64,000 bases of DNA from Salisapilia sapeloensis CBS 127946 (GCA_023334545.1 JAADVB010000027.1:52581-116580); one strand, 5' to 3'; shown: positions 8,518 through 50,625, counted from the first letter of the stretch. The notes: generated by a model from the letters alone, not told the origin. Numbers and translations: made by a program.

Positions 8518-10671
8518 ATGAAAAAGAGCTCAGGCAATCGGTTGCTCAAGACTGCCAGCACAAGCAGCATGGTCGGGAACAACCTCAACCTTCCGCCGTT
8601 GCGGTCCTCGGCCATCTCCAAAACGCTGGAAGAAGACCTGGAAAGCCAGGCACGCGCAGCTCTCGCACCCTTCAGCTTCGGGACGCAGGAAGCATACTTA
8701 AACTGGTCCGCCGTGCAGGACTATGCAGGAGACAAGTCGCTTTCGAGCTCGAGCTCGGGTAAAGAAGCCATGAGTGCTAGTGGAGGACCCACTGGCGCCT
8801 ATGCCGTCCTGTCGGAACGCGTCGCCCCCGTCGGTGTCAATGCTTTTCTATGGAATTTGATGAACAACAATGGCGATGCACTCGCGGCCAGTGCTGTCAA
8901 TGACACTTCGACGGAAGACACACCTGCGACAGACAATGATGAGACCGCCACGCCTCACAACGGCAGTCTCGGCTCGGACAATGATAACACAGGTGGACAC
9001 AGTAGCTGGTTCACGTCGAAATCGCTACAACAGTACTATTGCAAGAGCTCTGCGACTCTCCCAGCAACTGTGGCGGAAGTCGTGGACGCTGTCAACAGAA
9101 GCGACAAGGAAGAGTGCACGGACTTTGCCATGCAGTACTTTGTCGGCGTGAAAAACAGTGCGTCCGGTCTCATCTACCGCCGTCCGTCGACTCGTAAACG
9201 CGGGTACTCTCGCCCGTACCCCGGGACACAGCGTCCATCTCGAGAGATGCGTCGAAAGTTTATGCGAAGACACAAGTCGTCGTCCATGGGTCGCAAAACC
9301 TCCGGCTCAGCTCCGAGCACACCCGACAGAGACATGATCATGCGCCGCATGCAAAAGCATCAGAGCGAAAGCGAGAGCTCCGACGATGAAGAGAAGCTGT
9401 CGGATATGTCTCGTCCACCAAGTGCCGGCAGGATGTTCGGAGGCAACTCGAAGCGATCTAGTTGGACCATGAAACGAGAGGAATCAACCGGCGGATCGGA
9501 ATCCGACTCGATGGAGTCGGTCGAAGAGCTTTCTCTCCAAGACCTAGGCCGCCACGTCCGTCGAGCCTCCGCGTCGTCTCCAACAGAAGCGGATAGTCCT
9601 CCCATGGATCCGACGACCACGACCTTTCCTCCTCCGAATATGAAGATCAGTGCCATGCAGGAGAAGCTTCCACCGACGTCGGAAGTCGGGAACTACATGG
9701 ACGAGTACGACATGTCGTTCGACATGAGTGGGAATCAAGGCCACATGACGATTAAGTGGGTTGTAGGAGAAAAGTCTGGTCGGATGTTTGGATCGAGAGC
9801 GCACTTTGTCCTTTTGGACTATGAATGCGTCATCATAGACGACTGGGCTCCGAACTATGGACCCATGTACATTCGCATCCTACAGTCCATCTACTTGCCC
9901 CAGTGCCAGCCATGGACAGATGAGTTCCCAGGTAGGAGACCGACAGACTTGCAGCCAGTGGGCTTCATGGTCCGTCCGTCGCGTACAAAGGAGGACCACG
10001 TAGATATTCAATTCGTCGGCTCTGTCCTGGAGAAGATGCAGCTCCCGATGGCCAGTCGACGCGCCAAGCTCAAGCAGCTGGCCTTTAAGCTCCCGACCAA
10101 GCTCCAGGAGCTGCTCACGAGTCGACGACTGTCTCAGTCGTTGCGGACGCACCAGCCTCTGTGGGTGCATAACCGGGAACGCATCGGATGCAAGCTATGC
10201 GACGCTCGCTTTGGTCTCTCTCGTCGACGTCACCACTGTCGCTTGTGTGGAGAAGTGTGCTGCGCCGACTGCTCTCCAAAGGTCGGCATCAATAGGAGAG
10301 AGAGTTCGATGCTCTCTCGTAGTACAAGTAATTCTGGTAGTAGTAAAAGTGTCCGAGTGTGCATCAGTTGTCTCCAGCGACGCCGACCGAGTGACGAAGC
10401 CACTGGGAACAACTCGTCTGGCGGTTCTGCAAGTCAGAACGCCAAGCTCAGTCCGACGAAGGGACTCGGCTACGGCGGCTGGAGCTCTGCGTCTAGCTAC
10501 AACCTGTCGATGCCGTCGCCGCCGTTGAGCGTGAGCGACAGCCAGCAGTTCCAGATGAGTCGGTCTGCCACGAACGTCATGTCTCCATCGGCTCATGACA
10601 TGCACTGGATCGGCAGCATGGGCGAGAAGAAGCACTCGCTTTCGGCGAGTGTTCTGCGTCGAAAGAAATAG
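8518..10671 (+). CDS. FYVE zinc-finger protein with degenerate START-like region
   Basis: WVHNRERIGCKLCDARFGLSRRRHHCRLCGEVCCADC...VRVCISC: FYVE with an intact RRHHCR motif; single 717-aa ORF. Confidence 0.85.
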   Translation: MKKSSGNRLLKTASTSSMVGNNLNLPPLRSSAISKTLEEDLESQARAALAPFSFGTQEAYLNWSAVQDYAGDKSLSSSSSGKEAMSASGGPTGAYAVLSERVAPVGVNAFLWNLMNNNGDALAASAVNDTSTEDTPATDNDETATPHNGSLGSDNDNTGGHSSWFTSKSLQQYYCKSSATLPATVAEVVDAVNRSDKEECTDFAMQYFVGVKNSASGLIYRRPSTRKRGYSRPYPGTQRPSREMRRKFMRRHKSSSMGRKTSGSAPSTPDRDMIMRRMQKHQSESESSDDEEKLSDMSRPPSAGRMFGGNSKRSSWTMKREESTGGSESDSMESVEELSLQDLGRHVRRASASSPTEADSPPMDPTTTTFPPPNMKISAMQEKLPPTSEVGNYMDEYDMSFDMSGNQGHMTIKWVVGEKSGRMFGSRAHFVLLDYECVIIDDWAPNYGPMYIRILQSIYLPQCQPWTDEFPGRRPTDLQPVGFMVRPSRTKEDHVDIQFVGSVLEKMQLPMASRRAKLKQLAFKLPTKLQELLTSRRLSQSLRTHQPLWVHNRERIGCKLCDARFGLSRRRHHCRLCGEVCCADCSPKVGINRRESSMLSRSTSNSGSSKSVRVCISCLQRRRPSDEATGNNSSGGSASQNAKLSPTKGLGYGGWSSASSYNLSMPSPPLSVSDSQQFQMSRSATNVMSPSAHDMHWIGSMGEKKHSLSASVLRRKK

Positions 10672-10700
10672 AAACAAGAGGTAATGGAACACGTGTGTCT

Positions 10701-11919
10701 TTATTTTTGCTCCGGATGGAAATACTTTTGCAGTCCTTGACGCTGCGTTTCTGTCAGCTCCCTCGGGAACACGACATCGAATGTGATACGGAGATCGCCA
10801 TGTCGACTCGGATCGTTCGTTCGAGGCATACCTTGGCCCTTGGCGACATGAACGTATCTCGGAGGTGTCACCTGGTCTCTTTCGATGTTGACGACGTGTC
10901 CATCTAGATGCTCCACTTGCTTTTGGAAACCGACGAGACTCTCCTTAAGACTGATGGCAAGGTCCATGTACAAGTCGTCTCCATCTCTTGTGAATACTGG
11001 ATGAGGTAGTGTGGACAGGATGATACGCAAGTGACCTGCTTGAGCATGTTTGTTCTCCGGGTGTTCATCCGCGTAGTTCTCCAGCTCCACTTCTAATCCG
11101 TCCGGAGATCCTTTCTCCACATCAATGTCAAAGTGCAGGTCCGTCATCTCCACCTTTCGTCCGCCGCATACAGGACAGGTGGACGTCGACATCTTTCCTT
11201 TGCCACCACACTTGTCACAAGTCGATTGGAACTGCTGGATGAAGCCCATGCCCATACGTCTCGTCGTCGTCTGGACACCAGACCCTCGGCACTGGTCACA
11301 CACGTGGACGTGGTCTTCATGCGCTGCTCCGGAGCCATGGCAGTGCGGACACACAGTCTGTCGACGGTAGGAGAATTGGATGGTCTCGCCAGAGTACAGG
11401 GTGGCTAGAGAGACTCGAAGTGGCATCAGAACGTCCGGGCCACGTGTAGGTTCTTGCTCCCGTTGGCGTCGACCGCCTCCAAAGAACTGGGAAAAGATAT
11501 CGAACGGGTCGTGGGCTTGACGACCGCCTCCGCTCTGTAGTCCTTCCTCCCCATACCGATCGTACGTCGCTTTCTTTTCCTCATCCGACAAGACTTCATA
11601 GGCTGCATGACACACATGAGTACCAGTAGCACATAGGCAATTGTAATACGATAGCATACCACTCGCTACTTCAGCAAATTTCTTCTGGGCCTCTTCATCC
11701 CCTGGGTTCTTGTCCGGATGATGCTAGCACAAGCGTCAGTGCCGAAAGTGCCTGCTACATGTCGGATCAACATACCTTGAGCGATAGTTTTCGAAAGGCT
11801 CGCTTAATCTCGGCCGAAGATGCATCACGAGACACACCGAGCACTTCATAGTAGTCAGTAGCAGCTACGAGCACTGCAACGTAGGCCAAGATCGTGAGCA
11901 CCAGCGCCACGGTCTTCAT
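10701..11919 (-). CDS. ER-targeted type I DnaJ/Hsp40 (Scj1/ERdj3-like)
   Basis: Signal peptide [19 protein letters not shown]; J domain DYYEVLGV...RKLSLK|HHPDKNP rebuilt across two short introns; G/F region; four CxxCxGxG-type repeats; DnaJ C-terminal domain. Confidence 0.9.
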
Positions 11920-12080
11920 CTCGTAAGTTCGAATGTGTCTCGCGATCCAAGGCTGCTGGTAGAAAGATAGAGGCGTTTGTATGTCGAGGAGCGTGTCTTG
12001 TAGAAAAGATAGCACTAATGGGATATCTTGATTTTTGTATTTGGTCACTTCCTAACCAACAGATAGCGAGGCAACGAGTG

Positions 12081-14726
12081 ATGCTGCGACTACGCAAGTA
12101 CGCGGCACTTTCGTCTCTAGGATGCCGATGTAGAGCTCCAAACGCTCCTGCAATCCAGTTGCAAGTAGCCACGTTTGCGACGAATGATAATCGCAAGAAG
12201 AAGAAACATCAGAATGGGAATCATCGATCGCACACGAGCAAGCGGCAGCAACCTCCAGTACAGAATGAGAAGAAGACGGGCGGTGCGGTCTTTACGAACA
12301 AGTTCCAGAACCTCCTCTCCTTTGCATTTGAAGCAGAGGAAGATGAGCAGCAGACAGGAGCAGACAGGAAGCAATCGGCCAAGCCAGTCAAGAAGCGCAA
12401 TAGCAATAAGAAGACTGTCACCAAAGACAACGAGCCTCTCAGCCTCAAGATCGACTTGGAAGAACCGTCTGAGCTTGAAAGCCTCGAGTCTTTGAATCTC
12501 ACTCCTCAAGTTCCGTCCGAGTCGAGAAAGAAGCAGTCTCCAAAGCACAAGACCAAGAGCAAGGAGCGCCACCAGCCACAAGGCAAGCCAAAGCAGGACA
12601 CTTCCAAGCCAAAGTATGACGCTAACAAACCCAGACATGGCAGTGGGAAGAAACGAGAACGAGGCTACTTGCAGCACTTTAAGTTTGAAACATCCTTGTT
12701 CGACGACGATGCAGAAGTCTTTACGCACGTCGACTGGGGCAACAACTTTGATGACGGAGAGAAAGAGTTCCGAGCTCGTCGTCGAGAGAAAAAGCAGCAG
12801 GAAAAACAGGAGCGTGTGAATGCCATGCGGGCGCAGGTGAAGAAACAGGAGGTCGAGATCCCGTCGCCATCCGTCAGTGTCCGTGACCTCGCCGACAGGA
12901 TGAACGTCAAGACGAGGGTGTTAATCCGCGCGCTTCGAGACTTGGGCGAGGGTGGGCTTCACGAAGACAGTTACGTGACGAGTGAAGTGGCAGAAGTAGC
13001 GGTAGAAGCTCTGAGCATGATCCCCGTCCTCTTGCCTCCCGAGTTTGTCGATTTGGAGCTCACAACACCTCCAAAGGACACGAGTCACTTGCCTTCTCGA
13101 CCTCCCGTCGTCTCAGTCATGGGACACGTCGACCATGGCAAGACCACGCTTCTCGACGCTTTACGTAAAAGTCAGACGGCGCAGTCCGAGGCCGGTGGCA
13201 TCACACAAAAGATCGGCGCCTTCTCCGTCGATCTCGGCAAACAGTTTGGCAAGATGACGTTCATCGACACACCAGGACACGCTGCCTTCTCCAACATGCG
13301 TTCTCGTGGCGCACAGCTGACGGATGTTCTCGTCCTAGTGGTGGCAGCAGACGACGGTGTCCAGCCGCAGACTCAAGAAGCGATTGAGCTGGCGAGACAG
13401 AGTGGCACGCCTGTCGTCGTGGCCATCACCAAGTGCGACATGCACGCGCATGACAAGGACGAAGTGGTCCGTCGGATCGGGGAAGAGCTGATGAAGCACG
13501 GTCTGACGAGTGAAGGCATGGGCGGAGACACGCCGCTCGTGTGTGTGAGTGGCAAGACAGGAGACGGACTGCAGGAACTCAAGGAAACGATCGCCTTGCA
13601 TAGTGAAGTGCTAGAGCTTCGTGCCGATGACAAGAGCAGTGGTGAGGCCGTAGTCATGGAAGCAAATGTCGCCAAGGGAGTCGGCACCCAGGTAGACGTT
13701 CTGGTCAAGTGGGGTACTCTCAAGAGCGGAGACCTCGTCGTCTGTGGCCTAGAGTACGGCAAAATCAAGGCTCTAGTGGACGAGAAAAACAAGCGAGTGA
13801 AGAAGGTGTCGCCAGGCATGCCGTGCAGAGTCGTTGGACTCAAGGGCCTCCCTGTCGCCGGCGACGCTCTCTTGACTGTCGAGAGCGAAGAGAAGGCAAA
13901 GGAAGTGATTGAGCACCGAGAAGAGCTCTTGGAATGGGACCTCATGTCCAGCCATCAGGATGAAAGTGATGAGAAGAAGGTGGTGCGTCGACCTACCGGA
14001 CGCATGCGTCCTTGGCAGAAGGCAGCTTTACAGCGCAAACAGGAGGAGGAAGAGACGGCGAGGAGACTGCAGGAGGAAGCGGACGGTCCGAATTACGTGC
14101 CTATCGTCGTCAAGACGGACGCTGTTGGTGTCATATCTGCTATCGACGAGCTTCTCGCGAGTCTCCCGGAAGACGCCAGTGCAGTCGTGTCTCGCGTAGC
14201 CTCCGGCGTGGGCCCCGTGACCTCGTCTGACGTAGCCAAGGCCGCTGCCTCGAATGCGACGATCTTTGCCTTTAACGCGAAGGCTCCTGCGCCAGTGTCC
14301 AAGGAAGCGCTCGGTCTGAACGTGGAGATCCGCAACCACAACGTCGTGTACTCGTTGCTGGACGACCTCAAGGAGCTGCTCGACAGCCACTCGGACGAGA
14401 TGACACAGAAGCACGTGGTCGGCAGCGCTGAGATCGTGCAGGCGATTCCGATCGGCACGGGCGGACGACGGACGGCCATGGTCGCCGGGTGCAAGGTCAC
14501 GAGCGGCAGTCTGTCGCTGCAGAGCAAGTACCGTCTGCTGAGAGACGGAGAGGTGGTCGCAGAGGATGTGAACATGGGCAGCATGCGTCACTTCCAGGAT
14601 AAGGTGAGTAGCGTGACCAAGGGCCAGGAGTGCGGTCTCCAGTTTGACGACTTGAACGACTTCCGTCCTGGAGATGTGCTCGAAGCCTACAAAGTAGAGC
14701 GTGTCAAGAAGGAGAGTGTAGCTTAA
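12081..14726 (+). CDS. MTIF2: Mitochondrial translation initiation factor IF-2
   Basis: [61 protein letters not shown]-terminal GQECG; Arg-rich transit-like N-terminus. Alternative ATG at 12018. Confidence 0.93.
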
Positions 14727-14789
14727 ACCGTTTAGAAGGGAAATCCAAGTCGCATTTTGGGCAGTATCAACAGTTCTAAGGTCTAAGGT

Positions 14790-16361
14790 CTATAGAATCG
14801 AACGAAGGTACAGGAGAGCTGCGTCTGCGTGGTTCTCTTCGGCGCTCTCCAACGCTTGTGTGAGCATGTCGTGCGAGATGCGAGACGGTAGAGTCGAGCA
14901 GAGGCATTCCAGACAGGCTGCATAGTCCAGTGCGGCGGCGTCCACGAGCGCTTCTGGAAGACGCAGGTACAAAGCAGCATTGTCAAGCGACAGGAGCCAC
15001 TGGACGACGTCCACGTGGTTGCAGCTTACAGCAACTTCGAACGCATCCGCAAGCCACGCGTTCCACTGGAGCGTGTTCTGGAAGCTAGCGTGGAGACGAG
15101 CGAGAGCATCACAGTGACCTTTAATCGCTGCTCCCATTACTCCTTTAGAGCTAATGGACCATCCGTAGGAAGGGCACAAGTCTACCAAGTAGTCCAGTGT
15201 TTCCATGTCACCAGAGGAAGCTGCTTCGTCTATGACATTCGTGTCTCCATCGGCATGCAGTTGGTCTTGCTGACGCTCACGAAGCCATTTGATAGCATCC
15301 AAATGGCCTTTGCTGGCAGCAACAGACGTGGCTCGGATCGCATGTTCCGAGTCCAACGTCGAGATGTTGTTGTCATGGAGGAACGCCAGTACGTGCGTAA
15401 ATCCTCTACTAGCTGCATTCACGTACGCTTGCGGCGTACAAATAGATCCTTGCGGATTATCCAGTAAGAACATATGCGCATGGGCTTGGAGCCACTCGAG
15501 GATTCTCACGTGACCGGCATTCGCGGCGACGTCCATCCACGCATGGTCTCCAGCATCGCATTTCAACGTCTCCACGTGGAGATGGCCGACGAGGAACTCA
15601 AGCACAGCCAAGTGGTTGTTGGCAATGGCTCCTTCCAGCATCTTCGATCCAGCGAGTTCGAATTTCGCAGGATAACGTGTAGCCAGGTAGCCCAGCATTT
15701 CCAAGTATCCGCCACGAGCTGCGTGCTGCATGGCTTTCTGGATCTGCATGTCATCCTGGCAGATCTGGCGGTCGCAGAGCCACTTAAGGACGTCGAGACA
15801 TCCAGTAGAGGCAGCCCTCGCCAGCGCCCTGGTGCAGGAACCCAAGATGTCAGGAACATTCTTCTCCATCCACTCTAGCACGTGCAAATGGCCGTGTTGG
15901 GCAGCCAAGTCGGCGGCACGTGACGAGCAGCCTTCGTTCCGGTTGTTCAAAAGCCACTGCATGACGTCCACGTGACCGTTCATCGCTGCGAGGTCCATTG
16001 CACGACTAGTGCACCCTTCGGAGCGATGCTGCTGGAGCCACTGTAAGACGTGCGTATGACCGTTCTTCGCTGCGTCATCCATGGCCCTCGTAGAGCAGCC
16101 ATTCAGCGGCGCAGGCGTGTTATCAAGCCACTGCAGTATACCCAGGTGTCCATTAGCAGCAGCAAAGTCCATCACGAGCGTCGAGTGTTCATCCGCCGAA
16201 GAAGCCAGCACCTGAACGAGATGCGGGAGGCCCTTTGCGGCTGCACGCTCAATCGTCCATGACTGCGAATGGTCTAGGAATTGACCAATGGAGCTCCAGA
16301 CGTGCGGGAGCTCCATGTCCCTGGAGAGGCACACTGCCTTGGCTGCCGTCGCTGCGCTCAT
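14790..16361 (-). CDS. Oomycete-type ankyrin-repeat protein
   Basis: Repeated GC(S/T)xRAMDxAAxNGHxxVLxWL units. Alternative ATG at 16472. Confidence 0.85.
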   Translation of the reverse strand: MSAATAAKAVCLSRDMELPHVWSSIGQFLDHSQSWTIERAAAKGLPHLVQVLASSADEHSTLVMDFAAANGHLGILQWLDNTPAPLNGCSTRAMDDAAKNGHTHVLQWLQQHRSEGCTSRAMDLAAMNGHVDVMQWLLNNRNEGCSSRAADLAAQHGHLHVLEWMEKNVPDILGSCTRALARAASTGCLDVLKWLCDRQICQDDMQIQKAMQHAARGGYLEMLGYLATRYPAKFELAGSKMLEGAIANNHLAVLEFLVGHLHVETLKCDAGDHAWMDVAANAGHVRILEWLQAHAHMFLLDNPQGSICTPQAYVNAASRGFTHVLAFLHDNNISTLDSEHAIRATSVAASKGHLDAIKWLRERQQDQLHADGDTNVIDEAASSGDMETLDYLVDLCPSYGWSISSKGVMGAAIKGHCDALARLHASFQNTLQWNAWLADAFEVAVSCNHVDVVQWLLSLDNAALYLRLPEALVDAAALDYAACLECLCSTLPSRISHDMLTQALESAEENHADAALLYLRSIL

Positions 16362-16584
16362 GACTTCTTCTTTAAGGGGCGTACGCGCTACTGAACGCGG
16401 TCCAGCCGTCCGTCCGCACGAGATTCTGAACTTTTCGAGCCAATCAATGTCGCAGATGGTTTTCACGAACATACAACAAGAAAGTCTAACGGAGCCTTAA
16501 GGGATGCGGTCTCTTCATGATCTTATGCCAATCCAAAATTGGCTACCTATGCCTCTACCGTTCATTAGTCGCGATCATTGTGCT

Positions 16585-17109
16585 CTATTCACCTAACACT
16601 TCCGTCGCTAGTTTAGTTAGATCGTCATCCACCTGGACGACGTGTTTGTGCAAACTCTGGCACTGCTCCTGCAACGTCGAGATGTGGCCTCGCTGGACAC
16701 TTAGGCACTTGTTCAGGCGCTCGATTTCATCGTTCGCGCTGCTTAAACGCTTTTGGTAGTCTGTCTGTAGCTTCTGCAGCTCTTCACTCACGTGCTCCGT
16801 GATCTCCTCGATCTTGGCAAGCAGCAGCGCCTTCTCGGACTGGTGCAGCGAATTGAGCTTTTGGATCGTGTTCTCGTGCGCCTGGACCTTGCAATCCAAG
16901 GCGTAAATCTGATCTTTGACACTAATGCGCGTGCCGGCTGGGTTACCTGAGTTTAAAATCGGTGAAGCTACACGAACGCACGAGGGTCGTCGTGATTCCC
17001 GTTGGCATGGAGCACAATCCTCCTCGACTTCCTTAAACATCCGATCGCTCTCCATGTTCACGCTTAGGTTCTTCATCATAGTACCAACACTGGACAAACG
17101 AGGCTCCAT
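16585..17109 (-). CDS. Hypothetical coiled-coil protein (174 aa)
   Basis: ATG-initiated ORF with clear heptad periodicity in the C-terminal 110 aa; no family recognised. Confidence 0.6.
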   Translation of the reverse strand: MEPRLSSVGTMMKNLSVNMESDRMFKEVEEDCAPCQRESRRPSCVRVASPILNSGNPAGTRISVKDQIYALDCKVQAHENTIQKLNSLHQSEKALLLAKIEEITEHVSEELQKLQTDYQKRLSSANDEIERLNKCLSVQRGHISTLQEQCQSLHKHVVQVDDDLTKLATEVLGE

Positions 17110-17718
17110 GTTGCTCGCAGCGTGAGTCAGTCAGTAACTGTTGAGTCGTGTGCTTAGACGCTAAAGTAACGAAATGCCAACAACAAACAAGGAAGCAGCA
17201 ATCGAGGACGTAGCACCGCGTTTAGCAGGCAAGAATGCGAAGTATGTTAGCAAGCGACTATATTTAACCAGGCTATACATAGTCTGCGAACTCAAGTAGG
17301 TCTGGAGGATCGGAAATAGACATCCTATGCATAGGTACACATCGTTCTCATCCAGAGTGTTATCTCATCCGAGTCGCTTTGCTAAAGTCGAGTACTACCA
17401 CCCTGTTTTAAATAAATTTCCAAACGCGTTACGAATGTACAAGTGCCCATCGTCCCAAAGCTTTCCTCGAGTAAATTTTGCAAGTCGCGCCTGTGCGGGA
17501 AGCATATACGTTACTTTGATACTAGCTGATCTGTCAACATCAAGCAGGTGGAACACATCTGGTCGATGGGATGTGTAGCATGTGATAGTCCAGTCGCCGT
17601 CCCCTTCCTTTCTATTCGACAACGATAGTGATGATGTAAAAACTGGGCGGCACAATTCGATTCAACCGATCATTCCACGTCGGATAGCCACCTCACACAT
17701 ACGATTTGGACGGTGAGA

Positions 17719-19077
17719 ATGAAGCTCGAGTTCTCGCCGCCGCGGCAGGTTACAATTCCGGTCGAAGATCAAGATGCGCTGCGTGATCAAGCGATGGCTA
17801 TCATCGATGATACGCTGGACCAGTTCGACCAGTTCGTGCGCGACGGAAGAGCGCTCTCGCCGCAGTACTACCAGCCCGTCAAGGCTCGACCGGGACTGCA
17901 GTTGTTCCAGGAGCGCCCGGAAGCAACCATCCACTTTGACAAGTCGCGCATGTACAACCCATCCACGCCAAAGCTACTGTCGATGGACGAGAAAGATGGT
18001 GCTTGTCTGTCCAATAGCTCTGGGAAGACACGACACGATCTAGGCCTGACGTCGTCCAGCACAGGCAAGTCCTCTACAGCAGCAAGCAACACTGGCAGCA
18101 GCCAAGGCGGCAAAACCATTCGTATCGCTGAAAAATCCAAGAACCCGGTGCTCATCGGAACTTGGGCGGCAGATGGAAGCCTGGAGGATTACATGTTTGG
18201 AACAATGCTGGACGACCCGTCTGCCTCGAATTTTTCCAACGGTACCGCAGATGCCCGGTGCGACCTCCAGCGTGTCGTCGGGTGTATCGACGATCCGACG
18301 ATCGATGAGCCGTTCCACTTTCTCGGCATCCGGTGGATCCTATTCGAGTCGAAAGGGATACAAATGCGGAACCAGACGCAGGATACTGCAATTCTGCACG
18401 GCACGGGCATTGTCCAAGACAAAGAAGGGCGGCGCGTAGGGTACGACATGTACCAGTCCGTCTTGCACTCGAGCATCCCAGACTACAGTCGCTATGGCGT
18501 CGAGAGGATCAAGGTGTGGTACATTAGCCTCGTACGAGAAGAACCTGGTGGGGGCCTCGAGTTCTTCACGACAGCAGTCACGCACCCCGACAGCACACAT
18601 GCAAAGCGAGGCAAGGTCCCACTGGCAGTACAGAGGTTACTATCCGTCGTGGATACGTTCGACACTTCACTCGTACGAAAGCTGCAATGGCTCGCGATGA
18701 AATCTCGTTTCGACCCTAATATGCAGCGGAAACGAAGAGCTACGACAAGTGACGGGAGCGGCACGTGCAGGATGTGCGCCAAGAAGGCGAACAAGTGGGG
18801 TCCTTTCAGTAGCTCCACGTCTATCTGTCACATCTGCTGCGAAGTCGTGTGCCAAAAGTGCTGCGTCACGAAGAAAGTTTGCGTCGACGCAACAGAAGAC
18901 GAGTGCGTGAAGAGCACGTGGGAGTTTTGTATCGGATGCGTCATGCGAGCTAAAGGCAGGTGTGGCAAGACGATCGCCGCAGAGGCTATGCACGAAAGCT
19001 CACTTTCGACTGCTTCCGTCCGACCTAGCACGTTTAGTCCGTCTGGAAGCCAGGGTAGCAATGCATTTCATTGGTAA
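17719..19077 (+). CDS. Oomycete START-like plus degenerate FYVE protein
   Basis: N-terminal ...YYQPVKARPGLQLFQER, GSLEDYMFG, FHFLGIRW pattern typical of the family; Cys cluster CRMC...CHICCEVVCQKC...FCIGC lacks the RRHHCR motif. Confidence 0.75.
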   Translation: MKLEFSPPRQVTIPVEDQDALRDQAMAIIDDTLDQFDQFVRDGRALSPQYYQPVKARPGLQLFQERPEATIHFDKSRMYNPSTPKLLSMDEKDGACLSNSSGKTRHDLGLTSSSTGKSSTAASNTGSSQGGKTIRIAEKSKNPVLIGTWAADGSLEDYMFGTMLDDPSASNFSNGTADARCDLQRVVGCIDDPTIDEPFHFLGIRWILFESKGIQMRNQTQDTAILHGTGIVQDKEGRRVGYDMYQSVLHSSIPDYSRYGVERIKVWYISLVREEPGGGLEFFTTAVTHPDSTHAKRGKVPLAVQRLLSVVDTFDTSLVRKLQWLAMKSRFDPNMQRKRRATTSDGSGTCRMCAKKANKWGPFSSSTSICHICCEVVCQKCCVTKKVCVDATEDECVKSTWEFCIGCVMRAKGRCGKTIAAEAMHESSLSTASVRPSTFSPSGSQGSNAFHW

Positions 19078-42684: not shown

Positions 42685-44597
42685 TTACTCTGCTTTCACT
42701 TGCGCATTCGTCGTGTCCGCTCTCTCCTTCCACTTCCTCCGCAACTGTGCCGCTGCATACGCCACACTCTCGTCCCTATCACGACAGACCGTTAGACGTT
42801 AATTCATAGAATAAGACAAGGAAGAACGTACTTGGCTTTGCGTAGTTTAGAGACAAGCTTGCCGATCTGAGAGTCAATGATTTCCTTGGTGGTCAAGTCC
42901 AGTTCGTCCAGCTGCTCTAACGTTTTTTTCAGTACGGAAGCGTCTTGCTCTACGTTCGCCAGCATGTCTTTAATCCGTTCAATCTCGGCCGACCTCCCGT
43001 CTTCCTCCTTCTTGTCGCCCTTGAGCTGCTGCATCCACGTCTTCCGCAAGTCCCGTGCTGTGGCAGATACCCGGTCGTTCTCATGCTGCCGAAGATCCGC
43101 CACGGCTCTCGAGATGCCTGTGTTCTTCAAGTCCGACGTTTGCAACGGTAGCGACTGTAGTCTCTGTAGGATCTCCATGATGTCTTCATGGGACGTCTCC
43201 TTGGCCTCGAGCTGTTCACGCCACCTCTTTATATCGTCCGTCTCGACCTTGGTCTCTTGCTTGGCTTCTAGCGTACTCGATTCTTCTTCTTTCACATCCG
43301 ACTTGCCATTGGGTTCTTCCTCCTCTTCCATCGAACTAATAACTTGAGCCACCCCTTCCTTAATCTGCTTCTTATGATGACGAAGATCCAGACTAAGCCG
43401 CTTTTCCAACATCTTCCTCACACTTTTCGTCGTCATTTCATTGAATTCAGAATTCAGTAATATCCATCGAATCTCCTCCTCCAACATCGCACGTAACTTT
43501 TCCTCTGACACATCCGGAGTCTTCTTCCCAGACTTGCTCTTCTGACTACGCTCCTCATCCTTTGGCTCCTCCTTCTTCACAACTGCCTTCGGAGACTTTT
43601 CACTCTTGTCTGTTGTAGCAGATTGACTCTCCTCTTTCTTCGCCTTCTTCGAAGGTTTGGGAGATGGCGTCGAACTCTTCTTTCGTTTCTTCGGAGCAGT
43701 CTCTTCTTCTTCCACAGGTTCAGCAGGTTCGGCAGCTTCTTCTTCACTCGCGTCTCCACCGTCTTCCATATCCTCATCTTCATCCTCGTCTTCTACAGGT
43801 GGAGATTCGAGAGACGGATCCAAATCTGACGGAACCATGCAAGACGGTACTCTTGTGTCCTCTGGTTCGGCAAGATAGTCCTAGGCAACCATGCTGTCAG
43901 TTCTTTTCACTCGTGTAGATACGTACGACCGAAAATAGATTGAAAAGTAGCCTACTTCTGCTTCTTGAATGGCGTTTTTGAGTAATTTAGTCGAATTCGT
44001 ACGTTTGACCAAGTGCTTCGGCATTCCTTTCAACATCTCTTCCTTTTGGTCACAATCCCAATGTCTCAATGTACCTCTGTTCACTTTCGTTTGGGAGCTG
44101 AAAGACAAAAAAGCTTATGAGAAAATCTTTTCCAGCGAATATGCAGACAATAATGAACGTACAAGTCGTGTGAACCAAAGTAGTAGACCAAGCCAAAGTC
44201 TTTCGGAAAGTCGCGTGCCTTTTTCAAAATCTTCCGATGCCCATTGCCTAGTACAAGTACAATATCCCCCGTCAGAAGACCCGTCCAACCCTCTCCATGC
44301 ACTCTATAGTCTACACCTGACTATCTCAAGGCAGTACCAGTCGGATATTTGCTCTATCACAGTGCAAAGTCGCCAACTACGATACCCGAGCATGCCAGAC
44401 GAATTCCAATGTGACAACATACCTAGTAAATGCAGGTCCTCTCGCAGTGTCTTTGGGTCACAGACGAAGACGGGCCACCACGGATAGCCCTCTAGAATGT
44501 GCCACCCAATAGAGTTTGGCCCGGGCTCATCAACCTTCGGCATGCCGTCCACAGGATCTTGTTCGCGCTCGCAATCGCTTTTTATCAATGAGCCCAT
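42685..44597 (-). CDS. PWWP + DEK_C + tandem TFIIS-N-like chromatin protein, multi-exon
   Basis: WHILEGYPWWPV (PWWP); EFNEMTTKSVRKMLEKRLSLDLRHHKKQIK (DEK_C-like); two repeats of L..L..L.L....L..(T/S).I...V..LR....(V)...A..L..KW, the second completed by a last exon ending ...QLRRKWKERADTTNAQVKAE*. Confidence 0.72.
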
Positions 44598-44706: not shown

Positions 44707-47700
44707 ATGCTGGAGAAATTGGTGCTGGAGAACTTCAAGAGCTTTGGCGGACGCCACGAGATAGACTTTTCGCGTAGACTCAACTGCATTGCTGGGCACA
44801 ATGGCGCTGGTAGCACTATCTCTTTCTTGTATGTTTGGTACGAAGAGCTCAAGTAATGAGGCGGTGGTAGGCAAATCCAATATCCTCGGCACGTCGCACT
44901 ACGATCCGTTTCATTTATGATAAGCTAACAACAGACATGGATGGCTGTTATTATCAGAAGCGATCTGCTTTGGTCTGGGTGAAGGTCGGTGCTCTCGACT
45001 GCGAGTGCAGTCCCTGTCGGATCTTCACTTCAAGGAAGAGCGCGGTGGACAGCGAAATAAGGAACCGACAGTTGTCACACTATACTTGCGAACCAAAAGT
45101 ATATCATAGAATCAACACACTTTAAATGGTCAGGTATTGATGCAGGCCGTAGATGCACAGCCTATTGTAGTCTCGGCGACATTGAGTCCGACAACAGGCC
45201 ACAGGACATATCGGTTCAACAACTCAATTACTCCGGTCAAGAGTAAGACCTTCAAGTAGTATCAGTACTTGGTACTTTAGTCAACGCTTTATACGATGAT
45301 TACAGAAGTGAAACGGAACGTTCGTAGCTTGTGTGGCATCGACATTGACGTCTCCTCCTGGTCCTTAACAGTCTACATCATACTTTCTCGCCTCTCTTGA
45401 TAATCGCTACGACGTAGGGTGATTCGTCAGAATGGAGTACTAGAAATGGTAGCTACCTACACCTTAATTGCCTATGTAGAAGATGTAGACGTAAGATTTA
45501 TAAACTGTAGTCGAACAAGCGACCTTCAGAGCTCGCTGCTTACCTATGCGAAGTAAAACATACTGCTCTTTTACTCATTTAACTGTATAACTTATGAGAA
45601 ATGGGCAGGCTGCTGGAACGAACATGTTTCTAGAGTATGAACAGGATGCTCAAGATGCGATCACCAACTTTAGATCAGTTGCCATGAAAACGACTCAAAA
45701 CATCAACCAGCTTGTACAAATTCTTTACCAAAGTCACGAGTGCTTTCGCAGGACTTTTACAGCGCCTTGTCATTTTAGAAGCAAGTGATAGAAAAGGAAG
45801 CAAAAGTCTTGGAAGACATTCGTCGGAAGAAAGAGGTATTTTTCATACTACCACCAGAACAAACATCAGTTTTACTTGTTGGATTAGGTCGAGAACGAGA
45901 TCAACAAGTGCAAACACCAGATAGAAACATTAGAATCGTGTCGTCTATCTAAAAGTAAACTCTATTGCGTCCTTAGCTCAATTAAAATTCACATTTTCTA
46001 CGACAGAATTGCTAAACGACAAACGAGCACGTGAAGCGATGGAAGCTACACAATGTCAAACGAAGACAGACCTATCTCAAGTCCATCTGCAAATCAAAGC
46101 TCTGGATGAACAACTATCAAAAGAAAAAAATCGATTGGCGCCAGGTGTCGAGAAAGAGTACACGAAAGCAGAAGAGAATCTTCTTGCTGCATCAGCAAAG
46201 CAAATATCATGTGCTACACGCCTGGAAGCTCTATCTACACAGCTGAGGGAGATGGAGAAAGTGATAGTCGAGTGTCAGGACAGATGGAAGGAAGCTCGAG
46301 AGTGTCTCGATAAAGTCGAAAACGTATAACTATAGAATCTTGTTAGTAGTGAAAGTGAACTAAAGGTATCTCTGTCTTGTGTAGAAGATCACAAGGACAT
46401 CTACGGCAGTTTTAATGACTGACTTCAGTCTAACGAGAATTGCAAAGTGCCGGGAGACAGAGATGACGGACATAAGGCAGTTTGAAAGGCAGCTTGAAGA
46501 CGAGATTGCTCAAGTAGGAGCATGTTGATGTATCATCTCTTGACAATAGGACTAACCATAGGCATCTATAGTGGAGTCAATCGTCCTCTGATACAACTCA
46601 AGCGTATCATAATCGACTCCTTTCGTCCATTGTAAGTACCATCGCTGGTCTATCGAGTCTGTAGTCTAACGCGTAAGATGTAAGGACACGACGATCCAGA
46701 CAAATGAAACAGACATGCATGGACTCATTGATTCCAAAGAGGCCTGTAAACGACAGCTTCTAGTACTTCAAGACCACCTCTCGTCCTTTTCTACGCTACC
46801 ACATCGACAGCAAGTGGAAGAGGACTTGAGCAATGCCCAGCGTACTATCGACGACGTCCGAGAGAAAGAAAGGTTCTGTCGGTCATCTCTGCCATCTCTT
46901 GAACCTCCACTTCAATCTCATGGTACATTCATATCATCCCATGGACCTTGCTATCTCACTAAGTGATATCTGTAGGAGACTACGGGATGCTTGTGGACAT
47001 GCTTTCGATTCCATCGAGTGTGTTAGATTCGAATATCCAGAGAGAATGGCTTGTTCCACTCGGTCTGCTGCTGGAACAAAAGCTCTGGACAAGAGTTTGC
47101 GAGGATGATCGATTCGCAATGCAGATCATTCGAGCGAATGGGAACAGAAAATCCTTTACGATATGGTTCGTTCTATCATGTCTGTCGTCAGCTCTTTAAT
47201 AACGTTTTATTCTAGGCCACTGCAGAACCTGAAGGTAGGATCCAACCGATTGGAAAGACTTATGCCAGTGATACGCGATCGTTTCCACCCGGACGACGTC
47301 TGCGATCCCCGAGACCTTTTGACTGTTAGAAGAGAAGGCAGAGGACAAGAGGCACAATTACAAAAGTGCATCACAAAAGGTAGGGTATTTATATTGCAAA
47401 AAGTCGACAGAGGTTGACGATGTAGAAACGTAGCTCTGGGATCATGGTTACTCGTTCGAAACGACAGAATTGGGAGGGAGATACTGGAAAAATTCGACAT
47501 CCCAAGCGTTTCCATTACGCTTAACCTCCACGCTCATGGCGTACGCTACTCCCCATCACCTTTCAAGTATCCTGCATGATTCATATGCATAAGAGTAGAT
47601 GTTATCAGGCGGACATATCCCACGTCAAGGCCCTTTCTCCACCTTTCTTCGCATCCAGGAAATACAAGCCAAGGAGTAGAGTCTTGTCGGGAGATTAAAA

Positions 47701-49333
47701 ACCAAGAGACATTTGTTTTTAATCTGTATATGGTAGGAAGCACCTTGAAGAGAAAGCTAGATGTCTGCTCCAAACTCTCAGTGACGTTGCGCATCAAGAG
47801 GACATCCTTCGCAAGATGTCCAACATACAACATGATATGCAGGACATAGAGTGGAAGATAGATCGATGTCAACGGTATATTCGGGAGGAGCAAAGTAAAA
47901 GACGACAGTTGATCTCCGACCAGCGCTCTGTCCATTCAGCTCAACTCAAAAGAGACACTGCCATCCAGTGTCTACATGGACATCTGCAGACTGCCAAGCG
48001 ACTCCACAGTCTCTACGAGCTGCGAGACGTATTGATTAGGTAGATGTGCATCTCGTGCAGCCGTATAAAATACTCATGAACAAGTAGAGACAAAGCAGAA
48101 GCAGAAGGAGAGTTGGATCAGTTGACACAGAGTCAGCGTCATGCTCAGGTCCCTAAATGCCCAACATCCTCTTTCCCATGACTCATCTCTTTGTAGAAAC
48201 AATACGCTGTCACCCAGTCGAAACTGGACAGTCTAGAAGAGGAAAAGGATGAACTAGTACAGACGAAACGACAAGAGGAAGAAGAGTACAGCAGACTCGA
48301 ATCCGAAGCTCAGACGTGTAAAATCCACCGAGACTTACTTCAAGTCCAACGTCAAGAGTACAAAGATCTCCGAGTTTCCATTCATCGCACGCAGCGTGAA
48401 CTAGCTCAGCTGGATGAACGTCAGCAAAGCCTCTCTTCTACGGTTGTGTCGTTGGAAGAAGAGCTTGCTATCCTGCACAAAAGCATCCAGTCTCTTAGAG
48501 AAGAACTGTCCAGACGACGTCCTCCATTGTCTCCACTACCACCAGATATCGAAATGCTCTTGTCGTCGAATAAGAAGCAGCTATTGACTCTCCAAGTCGA
48601 AGAACGCTTCCTCAGAGATAAAATCTCGACTGAAGCGATATCGAGTGAAGAGGAGACGATGGGCAAGAAGCAAAAGATACTTTGGTTGGAACAAATGCAG
48701 CATCAGATACTAGCAGCCATCGATCAATTGCAGCAAGGCATGCAGGAGACGCAGGATAAGGCGAAAGAAGCCAACGCTGTTGCCTTGGACTATGTCAACC
48801 AAGTCTTTGCCTCCATCTTCCACACCGCCGTGCCATCCAAGACAGCTTCCATACAACAGACAGACACTTTGGTCCAAGTAGAGAGCATTCATATCGTAGA
48901 AACACACGAGAAGCTAAGTCTAGTCGATAGGATGGCATTCAGCTATGCGTTACCAAACCTGGAGAAACCTCGACTCAAGTCAAGAAAGAACTATCCGGTG
49001 GACAGCTTACCATGCTCAGTAAGTCTCTATCCTACTTGTTAAACAGTAGACTTCTTTACAAATATTGGTAGGCATGGCATACGTATTCGCTCTTGCGAGA
49101 TACAGCGCCTCCCCGATCTACTTGCTAGATGAAATCGACGCTGCCCTGGATGAAGACAATCAGGTCGCAACCATCCACGTCTGAACCCATGACGCCAACA
49201 TAACAGTACTCCATAGTCCATTGTCGCCAGTATGATCCGAGACACCTTCCATCGTAGCCAAGTAATCTGCATCAGCCATCGCCAAGTACCTACACTACCC
49301 GACACCATCACACCTCTTCCTAACAGCCTTTAG
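44707..49333 (+). CDS. Divergent SMC2-like protein, >20 introns (3' end approximate)
   Basis: MLEKLVLENFKSF; Walker A GHNGAGKSNILEAICFGLG; Q-loop VIRQNG; EAAGTNMF; hinge GDYGMLVDML...SFTIWPLQNL...ALGSWLLV...MLSGG; signature ELSGGQ; Walker B/D-loop YLLDEIDAALD; H-loop SQVICISH. Exons joined manually. Confidence 0.8.
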
Positions 49334-49431
49334 TCCCTCCACACGCAAGCACACAAGATCATTCACCTTTCATAAGCCAAACCGGAGCTTTTTCATTTTC
49401 TTTTCCTTACCAGAGAGTACGTATCTCTAGT

Positions 49432-50625
49432 CTAGGCCTGCGCCGCTTGGGCCTTCTTCTTCTTCTTCTGGTTCTTGTTCTTGTTCTTCTTCTTCGTCAA
49501 GCTCGTTGCCAAGATTGCAGCCGTCTCTTCATCCGGCGTCTTGTCCGCCTTGACCTTGTCCGACGGGAACTCGAGACCAGTGATCTTGGTCTGGCCGGAC
49601 GGAAGGAGAAGAAGCGTCGCCTTGAAGTGCGCGACCTTGTCCTCCTTCTTACCCTCCAGAATCGGGTACGACTCGAGCAAGTCGTGCTTGACGCACTCGA
49701 CGACACCCATACGCGCCTGGCTCTCGTCGTCGAACGCACGGATCGTGAACGGAAGCGTCGGGAACTTGGCGTTGATCTCCTTGAACACGTATCGAGACGC
49801 CTTCATCTTCAGACGGTACTGCTTCTCCACCTGGCGCTTGAACACAGTCGTACGACGCTCACTCGCCACAGGCTTGTCGTTGCCAGTCGTGTAGCACAGA
49901 TCCAACGTGTACACCTCGTTCGGCTCAAACGTCACCTTGGACACGCGGTTCTCCGCGTCGTGCTTCTGCGCAATTGTCTTGTTGCCGTCGATCACAAAAC
50001 GCTTCAGCTGGTGCATCACCGTGCCCTGGAGAGACTTGACGCCGTAGCTCTCTTCGAGCTTCTGGAGAGCGTCAGTCACCTGCGTGTTCGTGTTGCCAGG
50101 CTTGATCAGACGAGCACAGAGCTCGACAGCGTCGTGCGCACACTTGTACACGTTGGCTTCTTCGCCCGTGAGTTCAGGGAACTCGGCCTCGGCGGCGTTG
50201 CCTTCCGAAGGAACAATGGCCGTGTGCGCGACCACAGCGATGTAGCCGTCGATGTGGCATCCAAGATCGATCTTGACCCAGTCGCCGGCCTCGACCGTCT
50301 TGGATTCCGACGCAAGAGGAGAAAAGTGGCAGATGATCTCGTTCACCGACACGCACGTCGGGAACGCGACGCCCTTCTCGACCTTCTTGCTCTTGAAAAT
50401 CGCTGCGCAACGCTGGGTGATGATCAGATCGGCGAACTTGCATAGCTCGACGACGTCTTTACCAGCCGAGAGCTGGCTAAGAACGCCTTGGAGAGCAGAC
50501 TGGGCGATCTCAGACGCGAGACGGTACTTAGTCACGACGTCCGAGTTGCTGCAGTCCTCCGCCGGCGCCTGCTGCTCAACCTCTTCTTCGCTATCACTGT
50601 GCTGCGACTTCTCCTCGTCCGACAT
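49432..50625 (-). CDS. PA2G4: Proliferation-associated protein 2G4 / EBP1 (M24 fold)
   Basis: DVVTKYRLASEIA, KGVAFPTCVSVNEIICHFSPL, VKIDLGCHIDGYIAVVAHT, YRLKMKASR, FPTLPFTIRAF; K-rich tail. Confidence 0.93.
   Translation of the reverse strand: MSDEEKSQHSDSEEEVEQQAPAEDCSNSDVVTKYRLASEIAQSALQGVLSQLSAGKDVVELCKFADLIITQRCAAIFKSKKVEKGVAFPTCVSVNEIICHFSPLASESKTVEAGDWVKIDLGCHIDGYIAVVAHTAIVPSEGNAAEAEFPELTGEEANVYKCAHDAVELCARLIKPGNTNTQVTDALQKLEESYGVKSLQGTVMHQLKRFVIDGNKTIAQKHDAENRVSKVTFEPNEVYTLDLCYTTGNDKPVASERRTTVFKRQVEKQYRLKMKASRYVFKEINAKFPTLPFTIRAFDDESQARMGVVECVKHDLLESYPILEGKKEDKVAHFKATLLLLPSGQTKITGLEFPSDKVKADKTPDEETAAILATSLTKKKNKNKNQKKKKKAQAAQA

Follow-up and report, generated by a model that had tools for sequence, protein, structure and literature searches.

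A highly diverged, motif-complete SMC gene of Salisapilia sapeloensis belongs to a conserved oomycete family left unannotated in the public assemblies examined

The stretch of DNA analysed here, hereafter called the window, comprises 64,000 nucleotides of Salisapilia sapeloensis CBS 127946 (GCA_023334545.1 JAADVB010000027.1:52581-116580). Its region of 44.6-49.4 kb is without a long open reading frame (ORF) and contains short open segments in all three forward frames. A preliminary description had taken this region for an AT-rich and intron-rich SMC2-like gene encoding roughly 1,100 residues. The open segments were linked via GT-AG introns by a dynamic-programming gene finder, and the result was then curated by hand and aligned to orthologues. 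The gene obtained spans 44707-49375 on the plus strand and consists of 25 exons and 24 introns, with an unbroken ORF of 1,108 codons that starts with an ATG at 44707 and stops with a TAA at 49373-49375. The size, the AT-richness (45% G+C compared with 50-53% nearby) and the intron-richness first proposed are thus borne out; both flanking genes, in contrast, are long and intronless. The gene encodes an intact, motif-complete and very diverged SMC ATPase, and it is a member of a conserved syntenic oomycete family that was left unannotated in all public assemblies examined.

The exons were placed on the plus strand by reading frames and splice sites. Exons 1-5 lie at 44707-44809, 44871-44888, 44958-45098, 45153-45242 and 45306-45360, and exons 6-10 at 45418-45448, 45511-45552, 45609-45713, 45779-45835 and 45888-45954. 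Exons 11-15 lie at 46007-46323, 46385-46513, 46572-46631, 46685-46922 and 46976-47165; exons 16-20 at 47216-47379, 47434-47540, 47599-47675, 47737-48039 and 48088-48148; and exons 21-25 at 48197-48877, 48931-49018, 49072-49163, 49217-49285 and 49334-49375. The introns (within 44810-49333) are tightly clustered in length, ranging from 48 to 69 nucleotides with a mean of 56, and seven of the 24 measure exactly 53 nucleotides. Twenty-three are GT-AG introns and one is a GC-AG intron; the donors are mainly GTA and the acceptors mainly TAG or CAG. In the head and hinge regions, the intron positions and phases were confirmed when the protein was aligned, with splicing, to the orthologous loci of Pythium and Lagenidium.

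Two junctions deserve closer description. Exon 1 (44707-44809) supplies the start codon and the first strand of the N-terminal head and reaches halfway through Walker A (..AGHNGAG); it is followed by an 18-nucleotide micro-exon (exon 2, 44871-44888) that encodes (G)KSNIL(E) and bears the Walker A lysine. The micro-exon is flanked by phase-1 introns on each side and is likewise present in Pythium and Lagenidium. Intron 2 (44889-44957) is the sole GC-AG intron, with the donor GCACGT. No other junction restores GKSNILEAICF, which matches the GKSNILEAICF or GKSNIIEAICL of the orthologues. In Pythium and Lagenidium, the corresponding intron begins with GT; of the three lineages compared, only that of Salisapilia therefore has the GC donor. 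At the 3' end, the gene had been thought to terminate at 49333. This position is the last nucleotide of one more intron (49286-49333, 48 nucleotides), and the gene runs 42 nucleotides further to 49375 through a last exon (49334-49375) that encodes SLHTQAHKIIHLS before the TAA. Pythium and Lagenidium share this phase-0 intron after residue 1095, past which the Pythium protein continues with VFHRRAHQIIQV.

All the head motifs named in the preliminary description were located in the spliced protein. Walker A (GHNGAGKS, residues 30-37) is divided between exon 1 and the micro-exon. The remaining N-terminal head is encoded by exons 3-8 (44958-45713), which hold AICFGLG..RLRVQS, the Q-loop and EAAGTNMF. 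Both ICFGLG and RLRVQSLSDL come from exon 3, and RLRVQS contains the conserved arginine. The Q-loop VIRQNG occupies residues 137-142 (45419-45436), and EAAGTNMF (residues 160-167) stands at the start of the coiled coil, across the junction of exons 7 and 8 (45550-45552 and 45609-45629). In the C-terminal head, the signature LSGGQ (residues 1033-1037, 48991-49005) lies in exon 22, and the surrounding KELSGGQLTML is identical in Pythium and in a contig designated L002. Exon 23 encodes Walker B and the D-loop, IYLLDEIDAALD (residues 1057-1068, 49116-49151), and matches Pfam SMC_N with an E value of 3.3e-9. The H-loop region ICISHRQ (49265-49285), of which ICISH represents residues 1089-1093, lies in exon 24; within the QVIxxSH stretch, the six aligned family sequences all agree in Q, V, I, S and H.

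Between the two head halves, the order is that of an SMC protein. The putative N-terminal coiled-coil arm (approximately residues 166-480, exons 8-14, 45630-46922) has five prolines and two glycines in 315 residues, and the C-terminal arm (approximately residues 665-985, exons 19-21, 47737-48800) contains a proline cluster, RRRPPLSPLPP, at residues 891-901. The arms, of approximately 315 and 321 residues, are nearly free of proline and glycine, and they display a heptad-type hydrophobic periodicity as scored by a crude script rather than a dedicated coiled-coil predictor. The proline cluster lies approximately 90 residues from the C-terminal head, and a Pro-Gly break at residues 282-283 lies 116 residues from the N-terminal head; each arm may therefore carry a joint-like break. 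The hinge (residues 485-663, exons 15-18, 46976-47675) is a region of approximately 180 residues that contains DYGMLVDML..FTIW, PLQNL.. and ALGSWLLVRND..LNLHAHG and terminates in MLSGG, and the glycines of the terminal LSGG are conserved among the orthologues. The full set of ATP-binding and hydrolysis motifs, the matched arm lengths and the hinge with its terminal glycines together point to a working SMC.

Database searches agreed with this assignment. Exon 1 matched Pfam SMC_N (E value of 1.2e-7) and also AAA_23. The NCBIfam SMC models aligned with exon 1 at profile positions 2-34, with exon 3 at 42-80 and with exon 23 at 1086-1114 of 1165, which is the spacing of a full-length SMC. Among these models, SMC_prok_A matched exon 1 at positions 2-34 with an E value of 3.1e-8, and SMC_prok_B matched exon 23 at positions 1103-1130 of 1181. 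The Protein Data Bank (PDB) matches of exon 23 were exclusively SMC heads. The hinge had been described as recognisable but eroded, which proved an apt description. The window's own hinge exons had no match in Pfam or PDB, and the orthologous Lagenidium hinge exon, to which exon 15 is 44% identical, passed Pfam SMC_hinge with 27.7 bits against a cut-off of 22.5 (E value of 3.8e-6).

Several other identities and origins were considered. The Rad50, SbcC and RecF models of NCBIfam scored far below the SMC models on the window exons, and no SMC5 or SMC6 chain was present among the PDB matches of exon 1, exon 23 and the exon-3 profile. A Rad50, SbcC, RecN or SMC5-6 identity, for which a zinc hook (CxxC) in place of a hinge or family-specific head motifs would be expected, is not supported, as a hinge is present and the Rad50, SbcC and RecF scores are low. 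When a defence-type SMC origin was considered, a PADLOC scan returned generic ABC-ATPase N-terminal matches only. In the ESM Atlas, the look-alikes of the largest exon (exon 21, 227 residues) were generic coiled-coil and SMC_N-like bacterial clusters.

The genomic neighbourhood was then used to follow the gene in other oomycetes. In the window, the SMC gene is arranged tail-to-tail with an intronless gene on the minus strand (49432-50625) whose product is an EBP1-like Peptidase_M24 protein by Pfam and which served as a synteny anchor. On the other side lies a minus-strand gene with PWWP, DEK_C and Med26 domains (42804-43838, Pfam). The identity of the M24 protein to its counterparts is 79-82% in Phytophthora, Pythium, Lagenidium and downy mildews but 68-71% in Saprolegnia, Aphanomyces and Albugo, which marks the window as peronosporomycete DNA. 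M24 loci were taken from annotated genomes and searched by tblastn with the window SMC model. Collinear orthologues covering residues 1 to at least 1095, on the expected strand and beside M24, were found in two assemblies of Pythium insidiosum, in Lagenidium giganteum and in Albugo candida. Overall, an SMC orthologue adjoins M24 in six loci (L002, L003, L005, L006, L010 and L011).

In the public annotation, these orthologues lie in gaps of 5-7.5 kb downstream of M24 without a called gene: 11183-16441 and 11183-16439 in the two P. insidiosum assemblies (L005 and L006), 11183-16515 in Lagenidium giganteum (L010) and 11177-18677 in Albugo candida (L011). A gene divided into about 25 short exons of low GC apparently defeats the gene finders. 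Protein databases gave the same picture. When 1.8 billion representative proteins were searched exhaustively by HMMER with exon 21, no annotated protein was returned; only three ORF fragments of 179-205 residues were recovered, all on short Logan and ENA contigs, one of which (L002) has M24 tail-to-tail with the SMC fragment. A word search of proteins with the Pythium counterpart of this exon gave no match either. A single metagenome locus (L013, 69% GC) that matched a hinge profile was discarded as a chance match, since it was not collinear with any family model. In the A. candida orthologue (L011 12149-15200), runs of N and a duplicated segment were observed, with the ORFs at 12361-13071 and 13068-13655 repeating approximately 130 residues; this is probably an assembly artefact, and the orthologue models were therefore confined to Pythium and Lagenidium.

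The arrangement around the gene was compared among taxa. The order is PWWP(-) SMC(+) M24(-) in the window, M24(+) SMC(-) PWWP(-) in Pythium and SMC(+) M24(-) Med26(-) in the L002 contig. Only the tail-to-tail SMC-M24 pair is constant across the SMC-bearing taxa, and the order and orientation of the PWWP gene vary. In Phytophthora and Nothophytophthora, PWWP(-) directly adjoins M24(+), with no SMC gene between them. Even when three members of the SMC family served as queries, the 10 kb around M24 gave no match in Phytophthora cinnamomi, Nothophytophthora, Saprolegnia diclina or two Logan taxa.

To compare the gene structures, proteins were aligned to the genomes with our own spliced-alignment script. 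The full-length models obtained contain 23 introns for Pythium and 26 for Lagenidium, and at least 15 introns agree in position and phase among Salisapilia, Pythium and Lagenidium: those after residues 35, 41, 88, 118, 136, 160, 195 (194 in Pythium), 485, 548, 603, 638, 1012 (1014 in Lagenidium), 1042, 1072 and 1095. All four introns flanking the hinge exons are conserved in position. The protein itself has diverged considerably. Its overall identity to the orthologues is 35% in Pythium and 34% in Lagenidium, compared with 80% for the neighbouring M24 protein. Divergence is uneven along the molecule, the identities to Pythium and Lagenidium being 49-55% in the N-terminal head, 46-52% in the C-terminal head, 40-42% in the hinge and 24-27% in the arms (26-27% in the N-terminal arm). 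For exon 1, the identity to the Pythium, Lagenidium and Albugo counterparts is 50-62%, while exon 23, which holds Walker B, is 70-87% identical in six orthologues.

Two strains of P. insidiosum allowed selection on the gene to be assessed. Between them, the SMC exons differ at 1.28% of sites and the introns at 2.57%, and the exons contain neither insertions, deletions nor stop codons. The coding differences comprise 18 synonymous and 24 non-synonymous changes, which gives a ratio of non-synonymous to synonymous differences per site (pN/pS) of 0.40 and a significant surplus of synonymous changes (binomial p = 0.004). Purifying selection thus acts on the SMC gene. In the same pair of assemblies (L005 and L006), M24 (10001-11182) differs at 2 of 1,182 sites, and the SMC gene (11459-16275) at 2.4% of synonymous and 2.6% of intron sites, a roughly tenfold gap in silent divergence between two neighbours. 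Codon-usage selection on M24, whose G+C content at third codon positions (GC3) is 0.93, is one possible explanation of this gap. The SMC gene has a GC3 of 0.50 in Salisapilia, Pythium and Lagenidium, compared with 0.80-0.93 for M24, and all SMC orthologues examined are intron-rich. Since the low GC3 is common to three species and the orthologues share the intron-richness, these are family traits rather than signs of decay. In GC-biased genomes, a low GC3 together with a high intron density suggests that the gene may be expressed weakly or in limited stages.

The preliminary description had also likened the gene to SMC2, and this resemblance held for exon 3. Exon 3 alone matched only Smc2 chains in PDB, weakly. 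The exon-3 profile of four species matched yeast Smc2 with 20.2 bits (E value of 0.006), Chaetomium Smc2 with 17.8 bits and human SMC2 with 15.2 bits; SMC1A (13.3 bits) and bacterial SMC (12.5 bits) followed, so that the lead of yeast Smc2 over SMC1A was approximately 7 bits. As a lead only, we take GKSNIL, ICF, EAAGT, LSGGQ and PIY-LDE-DAALD of the protein to be SMC2-like. Exons 1, 8, 23 and 24 and the hinge exons did not share this preference, as described below. SMC2 would accordingly be the best, though weakly supported, parent among the condensin/cohesin-type SMCs, and we give its parentage of the family about an even chance.

A direct comparison with S. cerevisiae Smc2 (PDB 6yvd_C and 7qen_A) illustrates both sides. 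The two proteins share a head strand from residue 1, the AICF-LG..R..S..DL stretch of the N-terminal head (the best PDB match), LSGGQ, P-IY-LDE-DAALD, the head-arm-hinge-arm-head order and a similar size (1,108 and 1,170 residues). However, the window protein is far more diverged, and its exon 1, exon 8 and hinge exons have no Smc2 match. Its Q-loop reads QN, its H-loop ISH, and its C-terminal tail past the H-loop is 13 residues long; the gene is also intron-rich and low in GC3.

Whether the gene is an additional copy or the only SMC2 of its lineage bears on its function. A published inventory (preprint 10.1101/2024.01.07.573240, Table S1) gives Phytophthora infestans and S. diclina a single recognised SMC2 and a single SMC4 each, and Smc1-4 have been reported in P. 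ramorum and P. sojae (PMC2488364). As judged by M24, Phytophthora is as near to Salisapilia as Pythium is, so an annotated Phytophthora orthologue should score like the fragment P0001 (52 bits); the exhaustive exon-21 search contained none that did. Albugo branches outside Pythium and Phytophthora in the established oomycete phylogeny. The Albugo copy already has the derived features of the family, namely SHH at the H-loop, the LSGGQ..LLG signature and an intron-rich gene, and the canonical Phytophthora SMC2 is therefore unlikely to stem from this lineage. These comparisons make it likely that the gene is an extra SMC paralogue. The proposal that it is not the housekeeping SMC2, already put forward in the preliminary description, is probably correct, given the shared derived features, the syntenic absence in Phytophthora and Nothophytophthora, the lack of a matching annotated protein and the ordinary SMC2s surveyed.

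We therefore favour, with a probability of roughly 0.6, the reading that the gene encodes a functional, fast-evolving SMC of an unannotated peronosporomycete lineage (Albugo, Pythium, Lagenidium and Salisapilia), which would have arisen as a condensin/cohesin-type duplicate and been kept beside the ordinary SMC2. Several observations weigh against it. The junctions within the arms (approximately exons 9-14 and 19-21) are defined by ORF continuity and weak similarity only, and are thus less secure than the others. In PDB, exons 1 and 23 matched T. maritima and Pyrococcus SMC best, followed by Smc4 and Smc1, with Smc2 lower or absent, and the profiles of exon 8, exon 24 and two hinge exons yielded chance matches or nothing, and no SMC.

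The ranking of exons 1 and 23 would be expected if the gene were an extra SMC that did not come from SMC2, but was a diverged SMC1, SMC3 or SMC4 copy, or else a separately acquired or retained SMC of archaeal or bacterial type. The prokaryotic SMC models of NCBIfam match both exons with E values of 3e-8 to 8e-8, and the H-loop histidine (ISH) presumably resembles that of bacterial SMC (ITH) rather than the Ser-Leu, SL(K/R), of eukaryotic SMC1-4. Nevertheless, the score gaps amount to a few bits on 30-residue queries, and diverged sequences tend to keep the family-wide consensus only, which favours generic models; the higher prokaryotic scores probably reflect such a consensus. The longest head exon, exon 3, matches SMC2 best whether it is searched alone or as a family profile, and we take LSGGQ and EAAGT to be of the SMC2/SMC3 type. 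Compared with the prokaryotic and archaeal SMCs (T. maritima 1e69, Pyrococcus 5xei; TIGR02168 and TIGR02169), whose structures and models score best with exons 1 and 23 and which share the H-loop histidine, the window gene is eukaryotic and syntenic in oomycetes. Its 24 spliceosomal introns, at least 15 of them common to the three genera, argue against a recent transfer. This alternative seems unlikely.

Another alternative is that the gene is the only SMC2 of its lineage, a housekeeping condensin subunit that evolved unusually fast in Albugo, Pythium, Lagenidium and Salisapilia and was overlooked by annotation. In its favour, the strongest class signal is that of SMC2, and as the gene is unannotated, public proteomes would not reveal which SMC2 these organisms use. 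However, as Albugo shares the derived features, the recognised SMC2 of Phytophthora would then need a reversion, and Phytophthora and Nothophytophthora lack the gene at the syntenic site. A pN/pS of 0.40 and a GC3 of 0.50 would be unusual for an essential mitotic gene, and the identity of 34-35%, against 80% for M24, is not that of a single-copy, slowly evolving housekeeping SMC2. We consider this explanation quite improbable. A decaying pseudogene, whose exons would be artefacts of permissive splicing, might be suspected from the 25 pieces, the low GC and the lack of annotation in every assembly, but was rejected as extremely improbable since none of the orthologues has lost a catalytic motif, introns keep their positions and phases in three genera, the exons diverge half as fast as the introns, without insertions or deletions and with a pN/pS of 0.40 between strains, and conservation decreases from heads to hinge to arms, as expected of a working SMC.

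If the gene is indeed a retained duplicate, its product may act as follows. It would have originated by duplication of a condensin/cohesin-type SMC, with SMC2 as the likeliest parent. The protein is predicted to fold back on itself so that its N- and C-terminal halves make one ABC-type head, while its arms of approximately 320 residues pair as an antiparallel coiled coil. Two heads would engage around ATP via Walker A, the Q-loop, the signature, Walker B, the D-loop and the H-loop. The hinge would dimerise with that of a partner SMC, which could be SMC4, another divergent SMC or the protein itself, and a kleisin would close the ring to form a specialised condensin-like machine for looping or tethering DNA. 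Fast evolution under moderate constraint, a low GC3 and the gene's apparent loss from Phytophthora suggest that its role is specialised rather than essential; it may be meiotic, as first proposed, stage-specific or connected with genome defence. A bolder and rather doubtful extension is that the protein represents a seventh SMC of peronosporomycetes at the core of an additional condensin-like ring, dispensable (and lost in the Phytophthora lineage) and fast-evolving, with a conflict-driven or stage-specific role rather than one in mitotic condensation; such a role might be the restraint of selfish or foreign DNA, or chromosome organisation in one stage of the life cycle.

Specialised SMC duplicates are known from other eukaryotes, with DPY-27, SMC1-beta and Paramecium SMC4-2 as analogues. 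DPY-27, the SMC4 paralogue of the C. elegans dosage-compensation condensin, to which the gene had been likened in the preliminary description, and the nematode X-specific SMC complexes (PMC12629237) offer a possible parallel as lineage-restricted, faster-evolving duplicates of a condensin SMC. DPY-27, however, descends from SMC4 and has known partners and a known function, whereas the parent class, partners and function of the window gene are putative. Paramecium SMC4-2 (PMC10700549) may likewise be compared as a protist SMC paralogue retained beside the classical copy for a non-housekeeping task, but its parent is SMC4, it belongs to another lineage, and its role in developmental DNA elimination was demonstrated experimentally. 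What is new here is an SMC lineage that oomycetes have conserved and that none of the annotations examined contains.

Six SMC proteins are usually attributed to eukaryotes, and the published surveys of SMC evolution rely on annotated proteomes. Our results indicate that even a complete SMC, conserved between Albugo and Pythium, can escape all the gene calls examined when its coding sequence is split into so many short, low-GC exons. As a real gene lies inside the seemingly empty 5-7 kb gaps in the annotations of P. insidiosum, L. giganteum and A. candida, SMC counts in oomycetes, which include major crop and animal pathogens, may be underestimates. If the gene is truly an extra paralogue, oomycetes would possess an unrecognised SMC complex, and its loss in Phytophthora would provide a natural comparison.

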